Assembly: GCA_038496445.1 (NCBI GenBank)
Contig: JALMLS010000507.1
Coordinates: 715,601 to 779,600, forward strand
Length of the DNA: 64,000 nt
Direction of reading: 5' to 3'
Origin: Trichosphaerium sp. ATCC 40318
Lineage: Eukaryota; Protista; Tubulinea
The notes under the pieces are model-generated. The model did no database searches. It saw only the letters and a program-made list of their open reading frames with translations, and was not told the DNA's origin. A program made the position numbers and the translations under genes. This document shows, in pieces, positions 14,590 to 21,940 of this stretch; position 1 is the stretch's first letter, and each line of letters opens with the position of its first letter.

Positions 14590-17507
14590 ATGAAAAAGAA
14601 GACTACTCGAAAGAGGTGAGGGTTAATGTTTACCCGCAATTTTAGTATTGAACAAAATGTAGAAAGCGCTCTGTGGCAGCTTGCAAGACATGCCGGGAGC
14701 GTCATGTAAAGTGCGATGGCGGCAATCCATGTGGTATTCCAAAAATTTTTGGGTGTTTTAAGTTTTAGAGCGCTGTATGACTCTTCGAATAGGTCGCTGT
14801 AAGAAAAGAAACCTAAAATGCGTTTTTTCAACGCCAAGGAAACGAGGGCCACAAAAAGGTAAATTACATTACATAACAGGATTCACACAGCGCCTTTCAC
14901 GCCGAATCTCTTGTTTACAGCTGGTTCAACAAACACATTGTAAAATATCGTTAGGGCATTTAGAATCTGTCACTGGCGAAATGAAGACCCTACAACAAGC
15001 GCTACGCACGAAAGATGATGAATTAAGTCGTTGGAAAGCTTTGTACCAAGAGAGAGTCGCTGCACAATCCGTACGCATATTTGATTCGCTACGAATACCA
15101 CGTAGCTCTTTTTTACCTTAGCATAGGTTAAATAAATTTTAGATATGTGACTCAACAGGCTTACACTTACAACTCAGCGCATCCTTGGCAACGTACCTAT
15201 CGAATTATAACAATTTTTATGGCCAAATTACTGTACGAACGGACATTTAATTTCAGCGTTGTTTTCAGAACGCTTGTGGCCTCATTGTTTGTTTAGAGTA
15301 TCTTTCCTTGCCATGATTCGAACCAATTTTTGTCATTGTTGTCAAATAGAATGGGTATGGTTATAGCTGATGGGATTAACGGTTTTACCAATCAGTCTAA
15401 AATACATTCAACAGCTTTTTGGTTCAACTCTTTTAACTGACCCCAAATTAGAATCTTCTAACCCAGCAGTGATGACTACAGCAGCAACAGTTTGCTTAGG
15501 TGCTATTCTTGCTTGTACGTCGTCGTTGTGGTCATATCACTGGGTCTAACTAGAAAATAAATAGGGAATCCTCATCATGGTGAGTTTTTTAAAAATGTTG
15601 CTTCACAAATGCTACGCATGTCTTTTGATGAATGTCATCCACAAGTTGCAGCATGTACGTCTTATATATAGTGATAATACTCTTACTCATTATTTTTATC
15701 GATTAGCAATGTGTTTATTGGGTACATACTATCAAGCAAAAGGACAATTAAGCAAATCAAGGCATTACCTTGGGTTAGCTCATTGTACGTATAGGTTTTG
15801 GTCCGTCGCGCTTAATTTCTATTAAAAGCAACTTGTCAACTACTTGTTACGGATAAACATATTGGAGAAACAGAGCCTGATACATTACAATTATTAACAA
15901 TGATGCAGTTATCAATCAAAGTAATATCTGCAGAATTTTCACCTACGAAGTGCGTGTCAATTACACTGTCCTCCTAATAATTCGCCCGTGTAGAGAAGTT
16001 GTGCAAAAACTATTTAATGATATTCTTCCTACCTTGTACACTTTGAAATCACTATACCCAAACAGACAATCGTTAATTATATTGACAGTTTTGGCTAAAT
16101 TGCACTATGTAAGCCTCGAAACAATTGGGATGTTTTTGCTTATGTTATGTTTTAGTTTCAATTGGAGATGAGTAAAGCAGTTCTCATAGACGCTAATGGA
16201 GCATGTACAATAGTACGGTTTTGAAAAAAAATCACGTGATTGTGCTTATGCTAACACGTTTTTTTCTGTAGCAACAAGAGAAGTATGTTAAAGTTTTACA
16301 AGGATTGGAAGATTTGGAATCACTTCTAGATTCTCTTCCAGAGCGTGCTAAGCATGTTGTTTCTTGTTTCAGAATAATGCTTGGTGTAATGAAAGCGTCA
16401 ACTCACTTTAGCTGCGCAAACCTTACGCTGGCAATACAAGTACGTCAATCACGGCAAAGCGTCTCTACCAACCAACAAGTGAACTCACTTTTCTTGATGT
16501 AATCTAAAATTGTTTACGACATCAAGTGGTTCATTGTGAACGCAAAATTTGATCTTTGTGCTGAATACTTACGCCTTTGTTAGGTTGCTAATGAGTCTCT
16601 AAACCTTATTCGAAGTGATGAAGAGCTTGAAAGAATGGCTGCTGCTCATTTACCTGTCGCTGTATCTTTACTACATGATGCATGTTATCTAGCTATCCGA
16701 GGCAATCATCTTGGCTTATTCCACAAAGTACGTCCTTTGTACAGAATGACGAAGTGTTAATGGGCTTTAGACGATTACACACGTGTCAAAACTTGCTTGT
16801 GGTTGGCCACCTGGTGTTCCTGTGGCTTTGGGTCTTATACAACAAGCCAACGACTCCAACATGGATTATGATGAAGCAATCATTGGTGATATTTTAACAA
16901 AGTTAGGGAACACTCCAGTTTGTCTTAAAAAAGACCTAATAGTAGGATGGATGCTTTTAGGCAACTGTACAACTTACGTTTCATGTATTAAAAAGTACGT
17001 ACACATGTCACACTGATATGAGTGTACTAAACCATGCTTAAAGTTTAGAAAAACAAAAGGAAGAACCATCACTCCTTGCACCACTTTCAGTGCCTAATAT
17101 GACAGTGCCTGCTGAAGTCGATCAAACTAAAACGCAGAGTGTTAATTGTAGTAACACTAAACAACCTGTTGAAGTACATAGTCCAAGCAGTAGGGCACCT
17201 TCTAGTCCGTCTATTCAACTGGAAGATTTTGCAGCACAATTTTTAACACCACCTCAACAATCACCATTAAGTAATCATAATACGCTTGATGATAATCTCA
17301 AGAATCATCAATTTTTAAATTCAGAGGAGCAAGTGCTTCATCAACTTGATTTACCTGATCATGCCTTATTGACACCACAAGGTACACGACTTGAAAAAAA
17401 AACTATGATCAAGTTACTTAATCTATTTAGGTGGGGATCTACCGAATTTATTTGAGTATACAGGCCTGGGTGATGATACACAGGATAAATTCGGGTTCAC
17501 TCTTTGA
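14590..17507 (+). CDS. Zn(II)2Cys6 (GAL4-type) transcription factor
   Basis: Spliced ACKTCRERHVKCDGGNPCGRCKKRNLKCVF..RKRGP, then coiled coil, helical middle region and acidic/Pro-Ser-rich C-terminus. Confidence 0.85.
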
Positions 17508-17613
17508 ATTTTTTGTATTACTTCGGGCGGACTGACTGCTACGGGCTAAACTTTTTTTTCGGACGGTCAAAATTAACTTGTATTATAAAATCTGTTGTAC
17601 ATAATTGTGATGT

Positions 17614-20600
17614 TTACATACTTATTTCAGCGAGTACAATTTGTTCCATAGATTTTTTAAGAAAACCATAGGTGCACACGTCTGGAGTTTTGTTTGACGT
17701 GTGACCTCGTCTTATGCTATTCGAGAAAAATATGAGAAAAAGTTTCGAAGGCAAAAGACATACCGTGCAAAAACTGCGACTGGCGCGAAGAGATCAATAG
17801 GACTGCACAATCTAGCTATTATTTTATAATTCCCTTTCAGATTTTGTTGATTATTTGATGGTAGTATGTACTCTTGAGGGCCATAGCCTTTGATTTTTGG
17901 GTGAACTTTAAGTTTAAAAAAACAAGTGGTATATTTTGGGGTTTTTACGTACCTTTGCAATCTGTCGACATTAAACCGCCCATCCTTGTTCTGTTATTAA
18001 AAGAGTAACAATCTTCTCCTGAAGGTTCTATGACATGAAGTTCAATATTCGCTGTAGGGCTATTCCACACAAGCACAACTCTAAAAAAAAACTTAATCTG
18101 GCGCTCGCTCACAAGTTTTTACCTCAGAAAGTGGTCTATTGATTGACCAAGAGTGATCACCTTAGCTGGAGCATAGCCCCTCAGTTTAGTTTCTAGATCC
18201 CGCTTGAATTTGTCTACATTTTTCATGTTGACTCGTTTTATAACCTCAAACAAGTCATTCAATGCTACAAGTTGGATTTGGTGTCTCTGAAATCTATTTT
18301 CCCATCTTGTCTTTAGGACTTCAAGCAGCGCTTCAAACTGTTTTGATGGACTGTCCTGATACGCTGTTGCTAATTCCCTAGACGTTGAATGAGATAAAAT
18401 TAAGTAAATTCTGCACCAATGTGAAAGCGGTTCTTCGGGCAGAAGCTCCAACACTTTAGTAACAATCTTGCAACACCTAGTACTTAGTGTAAGCAGCTAA
18501 AACAATAAACCTTGCTCGCACAATTTTTGTACTTGATCCTTAAATCCTTCTTGGTTGCTAAACAGTACTTGAGATACCCAAGCGCATAATCTGAACTGCT
18601 GAGGATCTGGTGAGGTCGACATCTCCAATAACTGCGAGAGAATTCGCAAACCTATCATTTCTTTACCAACAGAAATACACTCCTTTGTAGCAGCCTTAAA
18701 TCCTGTTAGCTATGGCAATGTAAACTGTTTAAGTACCAGTACGCCCTCAGCGGTATCACATGTAGCTAATAAATCGTCCAAATTAAAAGCTAAACGAAAG
18801 CCTGGGGTTGCGATATCATCCGGCTCTACTTCCATAGGTGTTGGTGCGAGAATTTTCTTGTTTTCTTCTCGCCCTCTAGATGGAATACTTGCTCCTTCTA
18901 TAGAAACGTAAACATACAAACCTTTTTGTAGTGTTCTTACCAAACCCGTATAGAAATATTGGCCTCTGCAACTTCTTTAATCCTGCTACAACATCCTGAA
19001 CAGATACTGTTCTTCGTTTGCTATGTACTGTGTACAAAATAGTATTTCTTAGAACATTCTCCAAAAACAGTTTCAGTACGCATCGTGCCTCTGAGCAAAT
19101 AGCCCAATGCATACGTTTTACGCCAGCACGTCTAGCTAAACGCTTTATACAAGGTTTAGATATACCTACGAGCGCGTGTTAGCTAGCTAAAAAAGCAAAT
19201 CCAGAGCTACCATGTAAATTGTCTCGTAGTATTTTTCTATGTCTCTTTGCACCACCTTTTCCAAGACCTTTTCCAAGTCGCTTGACAGTGGTGTTTATAC
19301 CAGAAAGAGGTTTGGCGCTTTTACTTGAAACTACTTTGCGAGGCCCGAAAATTCCTGCACGTGCTGCTTTTGATGACACAGTTTTACGAGGGTTGGGTGT
19401 AGATATATTTGTTGCCTCTGGTCGCATATTAATATCGCTGGAATGAACTCTTGGTGTAATTTTATCCCAAGCTGAAGGTGTAGGACCAATATCTACTTCC
19501 ATTTGATCGAATTCCAAGTTCTATTGCGGCAGGTGAATACAACAATGAAGTAACCTTGAGTACCTTTTCCCCATTCTGCTGCAACTCTGTATACTTCATT
19601 GGTACTGTCGGCAAGTTGCTCATTTGATCATGGAGCGAGTCAGGTTCTAGGCTTGAAGGCTTTATTGTGTAATACTTATTGTACTCATCTTTTTGTTTGA
19701 AGTCATGGTGTAGAACCTTGTAGAGTATTTATATGAATGTATCTTTAGAAAAACAAACACGCACGTGATCGTTGACTTGTAGATTGGGTGATGTTAAACA
19801 GTTTATTCTTTTCTCAATAAGATTACTGACGTATTGTTTATAACTGCGTTCTTCTTGTTCTTTTGTACCCACTTTTGATGCCATAACATTTAAAAACGCT
19901 TGTCTATCGCAAGTACTTAGCAAAAAAGCATTGGCAAAAGGTGTAAACAAGCTAAAATCGCTCATTTTCAACTATAACTGTTTTGATGTACCGTAGTTGG
20001 GGCCGCGATTTTGGTGGTTCTATATTATGTTGTATATATGAACCAAGTGTACGCAATATAATCATAGAAGTTTGAGAAGTGACAAGCCCATATTTCTTTC
20101 CAAGTGATTCGACTTTGTCAAATTGATGGGATATTTCATAATTGTCAATTTGTTGCTTAGCCCACGTTCTACGAACCAAACCTTCGATGCTGCATTTTCT
20201 GTTTGTCATCCCATGTACGGTATAAACATGATTTATTGTTGTTTCATTCATGTTGTAATACGGATATATGGTATGAACATGTCTCATGTCTTTAACTTTG
20301 CCGGAGATTAAAACGAATGGAGATTGCATTACTTCGCTGTTGTGTGGAGCAACTAGTAAGTTATCGTTAATACAATTTTTAAGGTAATTTGTATACGCAC
20401 ATTCAGTGATGCCACTATCATAATCTGCTCTAACGAATCTCCAACGATTTTCGGGAAGAAGGATTTCACATGCTATTTCAAAATAATTCTTCGAGGTGTT
20501 CCACAAGTCGTAGAATTGGCCTCCACTACTCGTTGATAATCGCTTCAAAATTAGGCTGTTGTATCTCTCACTCCCGGTTATGCAATGAATAGGGCACGCT

Positions 20601-21940
20601 ATATTGTCTGGATAGTAAGAGTCCGGACCGAGAGTGTTAATGCCATCTGAAAAAAGCAGAACAAAGTCGTATTCACTATTTTGTAACACGGGTTCAACAG
20701 AGCTAATATCAGTTGCTCCGTAGCATCTTATATCCCTAACGTGCTAAAACACATTAAGACGGCCGTATATAGTACAAGAATTGTGTACGAAGATTATCTG
20801 ATCAATATCAGCGGAAGAAAAGGTACGTTTGTCCGACAATGTAAGTGAAAACGAAAAAACATCAACTATACAGACTGAGTCCATTATCGTTAGTAGCGAC
20901 CTGAGTGCTATTGTTTCCCTATCACACTATTATTGAGTATTTAAACATACGTTCTTACCGGTGTATAATATCTGAGGAACGAGATTTAGACGCATCCCAG
21001 AGTATTGCAATTTTCTTAAATGAAACATTTTCCTTTTTTTCATGACAATGGTAGTCACACACATAGTCGTACAAGCAAAAATAACTATACCTAGAACCTT
21101 TTTCAACTACAGTTTCATACATGATATCAAATAGATAACTCCCAAGAGTCATATTCACTGCGATGATACCGTCCATGCAAAATGGTAATACCCAATGACC
21201 ATCCAGAACAGCTGTAATACAATCTTTCCTGTCTGACCCTGAAAATGAAAATGCCGGTAGTTTAAGTATGCGCCCTTTATCTGCTCCAATTGTTACTGTT
21301 TGTTTTTTCCCTATTAATACGCGACCAGAAAGCGTAAAACTTTCCAGTTCTTTTTGTGTGTAGATTGGTAATAAGAGGCATAAATCGGAATAATCTAAGA
21401 AAATGTAAATGCGGGTTTAGAATCTTTGTAAGCGCACTTCTTGGCGTAAAGCCTCCTGACACGGTCAATTGGATTTTCTTCCTTGCTCCAGGGAGTATTT
21501 GGTTTATTTTGGCTCTAAACACATTGCCCACTACTACCTCAGCAATGGCAGTGTCACTTTTTTGGAACTGGTCTGTGTTCGCTGAAAAAGTTGAACGAGC
21601 TTTTTTCTTGCTTACAACAGTTCCTTCTACGAGTATCCCATCATACTCCACAGCGTACCCAGATACGTACGAATCTAGTTAACCGTTAAAAAGCGCCATA
21701 ACAAAGATGGTTGTACTTGGAGCAAGGGTGAACTCAAATGAAGCTGTTTGAACGGTTTCAGGTAGTTTGTTGTTAAATTCAAAGGTATAGGTTGTTTCTA
21801 ACGTAGCAGTGAGAAAATGTGGTTATAAAATGCGTTCACACACGTGCTAAAAAGTGGTCTATTTGGAAGTTAATAGCCAACGACACAAGAGGTAATGTCG
21901 CTTTTGTAATGGCATCTACAAGTACTATACGAGCTTCCAT
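17614..21940 (-). CDS. VIT - vWA-like - histone H4-like insert - TPR-like - DUF2135(YfaP) protein
   Basis: VIT (VSGYAVEYDGILVEGTVVSKKKAR); vWA MIDAS-like ILWDASKSR, GATDI, LLFSDGINT; H4-like region 18941-19271; LRILSQLLE / LELLPEEPLS TPR-like; VVLVWNSPTANIELHVIEPSGE..GYGPQEY DUF2135. Confidence 0.8.
18941..19271 (-). other. Histone H4-like domain embedded within the VIT/DUF2135 gene
   Basis: [38 protein letters not shown]...VLKLFLENVLRN...YTVHSKRRTVSVQDVV..LKK..LYGF after removing a 45-nt intron (19166-19210). Confidence 0.9.

Follow-up and report, generated by a model that had tools for sequence, protein, structure and literature searches.

The stretch of DNA analysed here, hereafter the window, comprises 64,000 nucleotides from the protist Trichosphaerium sp. 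ATCC 40318. Its minus strand carries a coding region (17614-21940) of 18 exons and 17 introns, which encodes a protein of 1189 aa in one continuous frame, from the ATG at 21940 to the stop codon at 17616-17614. This is exactly the gene span given by an earlier, sequence-only reading of the locus. All introns are of the GT-AG type (17/17) and measure 39-65 nt. Spliced RNA contigs back 11 of the 17, the gene model being composed of these RNA joints and six predicted introns. The RNA-backed introns lie in the 5' part of the gene (21843-21798, 21716-21675, 21437-21395, 20788-20744 and 20400-20353) and in its 3' part (18940-18898, 18521-18477, 18416-18378, 18122-18081, 17952-17888 and 17763-17717).

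Within this frame lies most of a histone H4. The sequence-only reading had named three introns of 43, 45 and 43 nt around and within it, and all three exist as GT-AG introns, with RNA splice support for 18940-18898. This 43-nt intron joins the end of the H4 part (...LYGF) to the next exon, and it is spliced in one RNA contig (X1 record 3) with a 21-nt anchor and CT..AC on the plus strand. Unspliced, the H4 frame would extend to a stop at 18876, the read-through product that the earlier reading had set against its own proposal; the RNA contig is spliced there instead. The other two introns are predictions, as RNA contigs cover 19084-18941, within the exon of the H4 fold, and leave 19085-20351 uncovered. 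The 45-nt intron within H4 (19166-19210; GTAGCT...CTAAC...GTAG) splits the codon of G28 and, if retained, leads to a stop at aa 791. Retention of the 43-nt intron that precedes the insert exon (19521-19563) leads to a stop at aa 711. In fact, the retention of any intron lacking RNA backing creates a premature stop, and skipping both H4 exons breaks the frame; the C-terminal module can therefore be reached only through H4. Additionally, exons 8-10 are long open frames of 80, 88 and 113 codons, each with a chance probability of 0.01 to 0.0015, and they chain in frame through typical introns. No orthologue of the window gene was found. Very probably, the locus is a single in-frame VIT-vWA-H4 fusion gene.

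The protein begins directly at a VIT domain (aa 1 to ~138, exons 1-3, 21438-21940), recognised by Pfam PF08487, which matches exon 3 with E=1.2e-8 and 35.6 bits (cut-off 26.5). A signal peptide is absent. Bacterial homologues are longer by 30-45 residues at the N-terminus and align from residue ~40-70; the window protein lacks this signal-like extension. A hybrid and vWA module follows (19992-21394, from the family alignment and phmmer) with a complete MIDAS, consisting of D272-A-S-K-S (20996-20982), G-A-T-D and S-D-G; DxSxS, GxT and SDG are kept throughout the alignment with 28 family members. Beyond the H4 part lies a helical TPR-like module (aa ~910-1071, 18123-18694), for which phmmer aligns q915-1071 with the TPR region of homologues. 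The homologous part of one relative, P0159, is modelled by AF2 as nine helices at pLDDT 89.5, with TPR matches in the PDB. The protein probably ends in a YfaP-like beta-sandwich, the DUF2135 / YfaP_C region (17617-18080), assigned by motif and homologue model. Its conserved motif NIELHVIEPSGE...GYGPQEY, which agrees with TDIDLWVxEPxGE...GYGPEEY in the family consensus, lies upstream of the region covered by Pfam PF09906, and alignments reach q1141-1165.

On the individual split exons neither the Pfam vWA models nor PF09906 (YfaP_C / DUF2135) gave a match, and vWA, TPR and DUF2135 are assigned by collinear homology. With phmmer, the spliced protein searched against 150 family representatives aligns an N module (q15-562) and a C module (q916-1140) in the same order as in the homologues, the best full-length relative being P0159 (E=1.5e-64). 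The architecture read earlier from the letters is thereby borne out for VIT by Pfam and for vWA and TPR by collinearity, with DUF2135 probable on the latter ground, as is the in-frame position of H4 between the vWA-like and TPR-like regions. The host protein is best explained as an ITIH-like scaffold, probably cytosolic or nuclear, running from VIT through hybrid/vWA and TPR-like modules to a YfaP-like beta-sandwich.

The two conserved modules are separated by a variable loop of 353 aa (aa 563-915, 18737-19991), for which no homologue gives an alignment. Across 129 homologues the corresponding loop has a median length of 201 aa, and in the insert-bearing eukaryote members it measures 484-814 aa. 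Residues ~759-855 of the window protein correspond, with no large gaps, to residues 7-101 of histone H4. The H4 tail (residues 7-28, 19211-19277) forms the end of exon 10 (19520-19211) and is identical to PDB H4 peptides at 19/21 positions over residues 7-27 (E ~7e-6), with K8, K12, K16, K20 and the KRHRK patch kept. The histone fold (residues 29-101, 18941-19165) is exon 11, a 225-nt in-frame unit, and matches residues 30-101 of PDB H4 at 38/72 positions (phmmer, E=2.9e-20; top matches all H4). At ~53% identity, alpha1 and the central alpha2 are best kept and the changes fall in L1 and alpha3. The tail is thus significantly better kept than the fold (Fisher p=0.0018). Overall, ~58-61 of 95 residues are identical to H4 (phmmer, PDB H4), in agreement with the 'about 60 of 93' counted earlier by hand. 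Histone H4 is near-invariant among eukaryotes, usually above 90% identity, and the insert, with 38/72 in its fold, departs from this. Residues 1-6 and the terminal GG are missing, there is no H4-type stop, and the N-terminus of the H4 part lacks an ATG, as the first reading had seen. Farther upstream in the same exon are in-frame ATGs, namely M684 at 19502 and the M of 'INMRPE'. The view that this is a captured, relaxed H4 copy in a bacterial-type protein is borne out; the copy is in frame between the two conserved modules, and RNA shows its 3' junction.

Just upstream of the H4 part lie two motifs (19311-19391) that resemble residues 16-26 of histone H3 by local alignment, PRKTVSSKAAR (19391-19359) and PRKVVSSKSAK (19343-19311). 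They are 7/11 identical to H3, a score reached by 41 of 5000 shuffles, which is modest support. The entire insert is bracketed by an exact 11-nt direct repeat, ATGGAAGTAGA, with copies at 19492-19502 (codons M-E-V of MEVD) and 18825-18835 (codons M-E-V of MEVE); ~0.16 such repeats would be expected by chance in the window. The MEV[DE] motif is also present in the loop of a Pyxidicula relative. The insert region amounts to 193 open codons with two working-looking introns.

The H4 case is, on sequence comparison, one member of a family-wide pattern and not a one-off. The new finding is that, in the loop where the window protein has H4, its eukaryote relatives have fragments of other host proteins. 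In Pelomyxa schiedti KAH3743917.1 the loop holds Ras/Rab-like domains (Ras family, E=2.6e-46), the first Rab-like copy having lost its P-loop. Pyxidicula operculata EP01125_P003670/1 and the metatranscriptome mRNA P0159, a full-length mRNA-like contig assembled four times, carry an IF5A-like_N (eIF5A N-domain) insert with the hypusine loop kept. These inserts retain SKTGKHG and are common to two diverged sister proteins. Mastigamoeba balamuthi EP00727_P000162 carries Snf7. P0056 (eukprot gene1486-12103_t), P0196 and P0198 carry actin residues ~5-70, in which the D-loop is kept and DNGSG is lost; between P0056 and P0196, a single orthologue pair, the actin piece is 76% identical and the spacers 30-33%. 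Inserts in the eukaryote relatives are partial or catalytically degenerate with their surface loops kept, those of amoebozoans are flanked by low-complexity spacers, and the insert-bearing relatives are single ORFs on mRNA-like contigs. Histone sequence occurs in 0/270 of the family proteins fetched, so the further VIT+H4 fusions that the sequence-only reading had proposed to look for in related protists were not found in this set.

In bacterial members the same loop holds TonB_C, SusC-type CarboxypepD_reg/Plug pieces, or nothing. The AF2 model of bacterial P0007 places the inserted domain between two stretches of pLDDT<50, and its N-terminus is a helix followed by a disordered stretch. Since the eukaryote members lack the bacterial N-terminal signal-like extension, the inserts would match the compartment, being cytosolic or nuclear in eukaryotes and periplasmic pieces in bacteria. 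The labelled eukaryote members all fall in one 13-row set with SH-aLRT 98 in an ML tree, which came from a quick search and has long branches. The family is patchy and evolves fast; even the closest relatives of the window protein are only ~30% identical. Together, these findings point to a family, so far undescribed, in which pieces of core cell proteins are displayed.

The sequence-only reading had offered H3 pairing, a bait or decoy, and chromatin tethering as roles for the H4 part. Among these, the comparative evidence favours bait or decoy, because the inserts of relatives vary and because the H4 tail was kept while the fold drifted. A chromatin-specific role cannot explain the family, given that the loop of relatives holds unrelated inserts (actin, eIF5A, Ras/Rab, Snf7). 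We infer, with a probability of roughly 45%, that the flexible loop presents the histone module as a bait or mimic. The loop between the N and C modules has captured this histone module, composed of two H3(16-26)-like motifs and then H4 7-101, and would serve as its display site. The H4 tail and the H3 K18/K23 stretch would be presented to binders, modifiers or proteases of histone tails. Most likely these would be produced by intracellular bacteria or giant viruses and, less likely, by the cell itself; the vWA/TPR/YfaP-like body may then report or neutralise the encounter.

A wider and more doubtful generalisation is that of a family of sensors or sponges, distinct from NLRs, that carry baits on the ITIH-like VIT-vWA-TPR-YfaP scaffold in amoebae and, in a periplasmic form, in bacteria, and in which each paralogue displays a fragment of a hub attacked by pathogens. 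The eukaryote baits would be histone tails, the actin D-loop, the eIF5A hypusine loop, small GTPases and ESCRT-III, and the bacterial ones TonB and the SusC plug. Against the bait reading, H4, actin and eIF5A typically have abundant mRNAs, and Ras and Snf7 are likewise conserved housekeeping genes; random cDNA or exon capture in a permissive loop would therefore give the same list of inserts.

The rival that survives best, although we hold it to be rather unlikely, regards the histone module as an address label that targets or anchors the scaffold to the nucleus or chromatin, either by pairing of the H4 fold with H3 or by engagement of histone importins and chaperones through the H3/H4 tail signals. 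The Snf7, Ras/Rab and actin pieces would then send paralogues to other sites. The N-terminal tails of H3 and H4 act as nuclear import signals, so a targeting role fits them as well as a bait role does, and the window protein has no signal peptide. The histone fold is almost complete, with alpha1 and alpha2 best kept, and domains of the Snf7 and Ras/Rab kinds lend themselves naturally to localisation. However, the fold is just 53% identical to a near-invariant protein and altered in L1 and alpha3, the fragments of actin (5-70) and of the eIF5A N-domain would be unable to co-assemble with their own complexes, and Pelomyxa's first Rab-like copy lacks the P-loop.

Less probable is an endogenous pseudo-substrate, in which the displayed tails would titrate, or else recruit, endogenous histone acetylases, deacetylases, methylases or chaperones and so regulate histone supply or modification, not defence. 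It draws on the H4 and H3-like evidence that also underlies bait display, and the action of a Dictyostelium VIT/vWFA protein with an SCF-type ubiquitin ligase in development implies that the fold has housekeeping regulatory roles (PMC10539598). Yet this rival leaves unexplained why such different proteins sit on paralogues and relatives, and envelope pieces on bacterial members, and it sits poorly with a family that is patchy and fast-evolving.

Little probability is also left for a functionless passenger, a fragment of an abundant gene (H4) that was inserted by exon shuffling or repair and persists by keeping the frame. The drift of the fold, the hypervariability of the loop in length and sequence, and the bracketing 11-nt repeat, as after microhomology-mediated insertion, would all fit it, as would the conserved housekeeping nature of the captured genes, of which H4, actin and eIF5A are typically abundant. 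It is countered by a tail that was kept despite the drift of the fold, by the 193 open codons and two working-looking introns, by the conservation of the actin insert relative to its spacers in the one orthologue pair, and by eIF5A inserts that kept the hypusine loop in two diverged sister proteins. Least probable is a mis-joined model of two products, in which an internal start (e.g. M684) yields an H3-like/H4/TPR/YfaP-like protein with H4 near the N-terminus of a shorter protein, not inside a loop, and VIT-vWA is separate: the RNA contigs leave the link from the vWA half to the H4 exon uncovered and in-frame ATGs precede the H4 part in its own exon, but exons 8-10 are long open frames chaining through typical introns, homologues are single proteins of the same module order, and the insert-bearing relatives are single ORFs.

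To our knowledge, histone H4, among the most conserved proteins, is almost never a domain of another protein, and the integrated-decoy principle has hitherto been known from plant NLRs. Legionella and giant viruses have amoebae as their natural hosts. Should the slot serve for display, it would represent a second, independent invention of this principle, and the inserts would point to host proteins under attack; if the sensor or sponge reading is true, their list would be a catalogue of pathogen targets in protists. Even with another function, the family provides a clear and testable example of how pieces of host proteins were captured repeatedly, and under selection, at a single structural position. 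Our literature searches found no published description of a VIT-vWA-H4-TPR-DUF2135 architecture. The earlier reading, which knew of no such protein and named it the best candidate for a new system here, undersells a family whose relatives carry other inserts.

Compared with known systems, the insert resembles canonical H4, with residues 7-101 aligning and the tail lysines and basic patch kept, and it shares RRTVSV and a 15-letter stretch with a stand-alone, divergent H4-like protein, P0269. Canonical H4 stands alone at ~103 aa, with a start and a stop of its own; the insert is part of a protein of 1189 aa. The pairing of VIT with vWA is described (PMC10539598), and the first 600 residues of one family member share the fold of ITIH1 (PDB 6fpy; E=1.7e-21, identity 11-14%). 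Unlike the present family, ITIH1, VWA5A and Dictyostelium Vwa1 lack TPR, YfaP-like modules and inserted host fragments. The C-terminal beta-sandwich in the model of a family homologue matches residues 138-258 of E. coli YfaP (P76462; E=1.8e-8, 29% identity, rmsd 2.0), but YfaP has 258 aa and no VIT, vWA or loop insert. E. coli yfaP sits in the yfaS alpha-2-macroglobulin-like gene cluster. In a comparison with bait-and-trap proteins of the A2M type, the thioester motif CGEQ is absent from the 1189-aa sequence, and fold searches return ITIH1, TPR and YfaP, not A2M; as regards an exposed flexible bait region, the AF2 model of P0007 has the pLDDT<50 stretches on either side of its insert.

Like plant NLR-ID proteins, the family has a host-protein copy built in, with inserts that differ between members and catalytic motifs lost. 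Unlike them, it has no NB-ARC/NACHT NTPase, no LRR and no known helper, no exon having a Pfam match to a STAND NTPase (NB-ARC or NACHT), and an immune role is putative here. The scaffold belongs to a mostly bacterial protein family; close to it are the bacterial VIT-vWA-TPR-YfaP_C (DUF2135) proteins, exemplified by VIT proteins from Kaistella, Flavobacterium, Kordia and Planctomycetota MAGs, with which it shares collinear modules, an intact MIDAS and the same variable loop. It differs from them, at ~30% identity, in being intron-rich, in carrying H4 in the loop and in having no signal-like extension. With the proteins of Pelomyxa, Pyxidicula, Mastigamoeba and P0056 it shares the scaffold, the loop and a partial or degenerate copy of a conserved host protein, which is H4 in the window and Ras/Rab-like, eIF5A, Snf7 or actin in these amoebozoan relatives.

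A single minus-strand gene in the window carries a copy of histone H4 within the variable loop (aa 563-915) that separates its N module (VIT and vWA) from its C module (TPR-like and YfaP-like). The gene runs from an ATG at 21940 to a stop at 17616-17614 and comprises 18 exons, encoding a product of 1189 aa. All 17 of its introns are of the GT-AG type, with lengths of 39-65 nt; the majority begin with GTR and finish with TAG, and several contain a CTAAC-like branch site. The window itself is AT-rich (36-42% GC) and intron-dense. Eleven of the introns are supported by spliced RNA contigs from two public runs that match the window at 99% identity or more. These are 21843-21798, 21716-21675, 21437-21395, 20788-20744 and 20400-20353 in the 5' part, and 18940-18898, 18521-18477, 18416-18378, 18122-18081, 17952-17888 and 17763-17717 in the 3' part. 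The other six (20958-20919, 19991-19952, 19758-19717, 19563-19521, 19210-19166 and 18736-18695) are predicted only; the RNA contigs leave 19085-20351 uncovered, and junctions within that stretch are predictions. Computed retention of any one of the six gives a premature stop, and the exon frames in the uncovered part remain open over 80, 88 and 113 codons, with chance probabilities of 0.01 to 0.0015 each at the window's stop-triplet frequency.

A mechanical dynamic-programming gene model placed several junctions wrongly, and the RNA joints were used instead. Two RNA-supported introns, 20400-20353 (48 nt) and 18416-18378 (39 nt), are stop-free multiples of three, so that ORF-based gene calling reads through them; such read-through occurred in an ORF-based query of 263 aa. 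A six-codon upstream ORF (ATG CAA TGG AAG CTC GTA TAG; 21945-21925, minus strand) overlaps the main ATG at 21940 in a different frame, and an RNA contig extends to at least 21962. On the other side, a convergent neighbour gene lies on the plus strand at 17040-17534 and has a GT-AG intron, 17380-17428, that is seen in RNA. Only about 50 nt separate the end of its transcript contig from the 3' end (17586) of the transcript contig of the H4-bearing gene.

The histone part is divided between two exons. For exon 19165-18941, every PDB match is a histone H4 chain (residues 30-101, E=2.9e-20, 38/72 identical), and the 21 residues that close exon 19520-19211 agree with H4 residues 7-27 at 19 positions. 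The tail is thus preserved significantly better than the fold (19/21 vs 38/72, Fisher p=0.0018). The sequence-only reading had counted about 60 identical residues in 93, and these matches bear out that count. It had also placed three introns correctly, with 18940-18898 seen in RNA, and 19563-19521 and 19210-19166 predicted only, and had rightly seen that the histone has no start of its own, as there is no ATG at the N-terminus and residues 1-6 are missing. There is no H4 stop either. An RNA contig (X1 record 3) spans 19084-18941 and continues for 21 nt past intron 18940-18898, splicing ...LYGF to EGASIPS... and bypassing the stop at 18876; the unspliced read-through to that stop, raised earlier as the case against a fusion, is not what this contig shows. 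An independent canonical H4 gene is ruled out by the missing start and stop and by the onward splicing of the C-terminus. Exon 11 by itself (225 nt) is an in-frame unit, and computed skipping of both H4 exons gives a frameshift with a stop at aa 701.

Directly upstream of the H4 part stand PRKTVSSKAAR and PRKVVSSKSAK. The former shares 7 of 11 residues with H3 residues 16-26, a score reached by 41 of 5000 shuffles, which gives modest support. Descent from a viral histone doublet was also weighed; in the insert an H3-tail-like part precedes H4, and the tail is of eukaryotic type. The entire H3-like and H4 insert (667 nt with two introns, 193 codons) is flanked by two identical 11-nt copies of ATGGAAGTAGA (codons M-E-V) in direct orientation, at 19502-19492 and 18835-18825 on the minus strand; chance would give about 0.16 repeats of this kind over this stretch. 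MEV[DE] is also found ahead of the Pyxidicula eIF5A insert, and the repeat could have been left behind by the insertion or could be a short motif with a function. A word-index search with the H4 exon gave two candidates only, both divergent stand-alone H4-like proteins. The closer, P0269 (L005:858-1211, Logan DRR659772), is about 66% identical to the insert and comes from a stand-alone gene of 117 aa with an extended GK-rich tail. The two have several derived residues in common, including a 15-residue stretch and RRTVSV. The P0269 gene adjoins an oxidoreductase gene.

The protein holding this insert belongs to a large family. With the largest exon as query, HMMER gave 744 relatives, of which not one exceeds 33% identity; the nearest of them suggest an amoebozoan affinity. 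The spliced protein aligns with the best 150 relatives in two collinear blocks, residues 15-562 and 916-1140, the stretch between aligning to none of these 150. VIT was found directly by Pfam, which on single exons gave only VIT and weak histone-fold matches, leaving vWA, TPR and DUF2135 undetected with the exons split. The vWA MIDAS residues are intact and conserved across the family. In the closest relative, the C module was modelled (pLDDT 89.5) as a TPR-like helical repeat followed by a beta-sandwich, the latter matching E. coli YfaP (AFDB Swiss-Prot, E=1.8e-8), in keeping with YfaP_C, the name that Pfam now gives to PF09906; Foldseek against the PDB gave TPR matches only for the C module. 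Modelled over its full length, bacterial P0007 (pLDDT 86.7, pTM 0.80) shows an N half resembling ITIH1 (6fpy, E=1.7e-21) and a loop-inserted domain between two disordered stretches. Named family members come from Bacteroidota, Planctomycetota and other bacteria, and word-index searches with two insert carriers, P0159 (eIF5A) and P0056 (actin), returned mostly bacterial proteins. The gene neighbourhoods of two bacterial members had no partner in common.

Holding host fragments in the loop is a family-wide habit. Across 129 homologues the median loop length is 201 aa, compared with 353 aa in the window protein, and four eukaryote proteins have the longest loops. In Pelomyxa schiedti KAH3743917.1 it contains Ras/Rab-like domains (E=2.6e-46), the first copy without P-loop and without DTAGQE, and in Mastigamoeba balamuthi EP00727_P000162 the Snf7 N-terminal hairpin. 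Pyxidicula operculata transcripts and P0159 bear two eIF5A N-domains with the hypusine loop SKTGKHG kept, and in P0056, P0196 and P0198 the insert is a piece of actin (residues about 5-70) that retains the D-loop and lacks DNGSG. P0056, a eukprot entry, may come from the same genome as the window. P0159 is a 4.09-kb mRNA-like contig recovered in four independent assemblies, so the host-fragment fusions are not assembly artefacts. None of the 270 fetched family proteins carries a histone. P0198, of 1666 aa, continues after its actin piece with long proline-rich runs (PPPPPLP) and an LKK-containing stretch (850-1130), which looks like profilin- or WH2-type actin-binder motifs. In a maximum-likelihood tree, built with a short search and having long branches, the labelled eukaryote members all fall in one 13-row set (SH-aLRT 98), with the two eIF5A carriers as sisters. 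Among 121 bacterial loops there are CarboxypepD_reg (15), Plug (6) and TonB_C (2), all parts of the TonB-dependent transport system (examples are P0108:545-925, P0143:540-925, P0111:570-940 and P0007:566-832); CarboxypepD_reg, with or without Plug, is the N-terminal part of SusC-like transporters. The presence of such pieces at the same loop suggests that the putative display slot is ancestral.

The loop would display host fragments as baits or mimics. This reading is favoured because the inserts come from unrelated hub proteins, have lost catalytic motifs but retain loops that lie at the surface or are modified, and match the compartment of the scaffold. A further reason lies in the biology of amoebae, which harbour many intracellular bacteria and giant viruses. 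The histone module would most likely offer its H4 and H3 tail sequences to binding, modifying or clipping proteins, with foreign factors as the likeliest clients. Four rival readings are less probable. The same presentation of tails would serve an endogenous pseudo-substrate, which differs in the client being the cell's own. As an address label, the module would act through H3 pairing or histone import signals. A neutral passenger fits less well with the better preservation of the H4 tail and with the pair P0056 and P0196 (57% identical overall), where an actin piece 76% identical between spacers 30-33% identical points to selection on the actin insert. In the remaining rival, the gene would give two separate products.

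The architecture had been called undescribed, and literature searches on DUF2135, amoeba integrated decoys and Pelomyxa VIT proteins likewise gave no description of it. The closest publication is on Dictyostelium Vwa1 and on how VIT/vWFA proteins evolved; it notes a clade of bacteria and select protists without mention of inserts (PMC10539598). Compared with the bacterial members, which carry an N-terminal signal-like extension and whose loop may hold envelope baits, the window protein lacks such an extension and holds histone in its loop.
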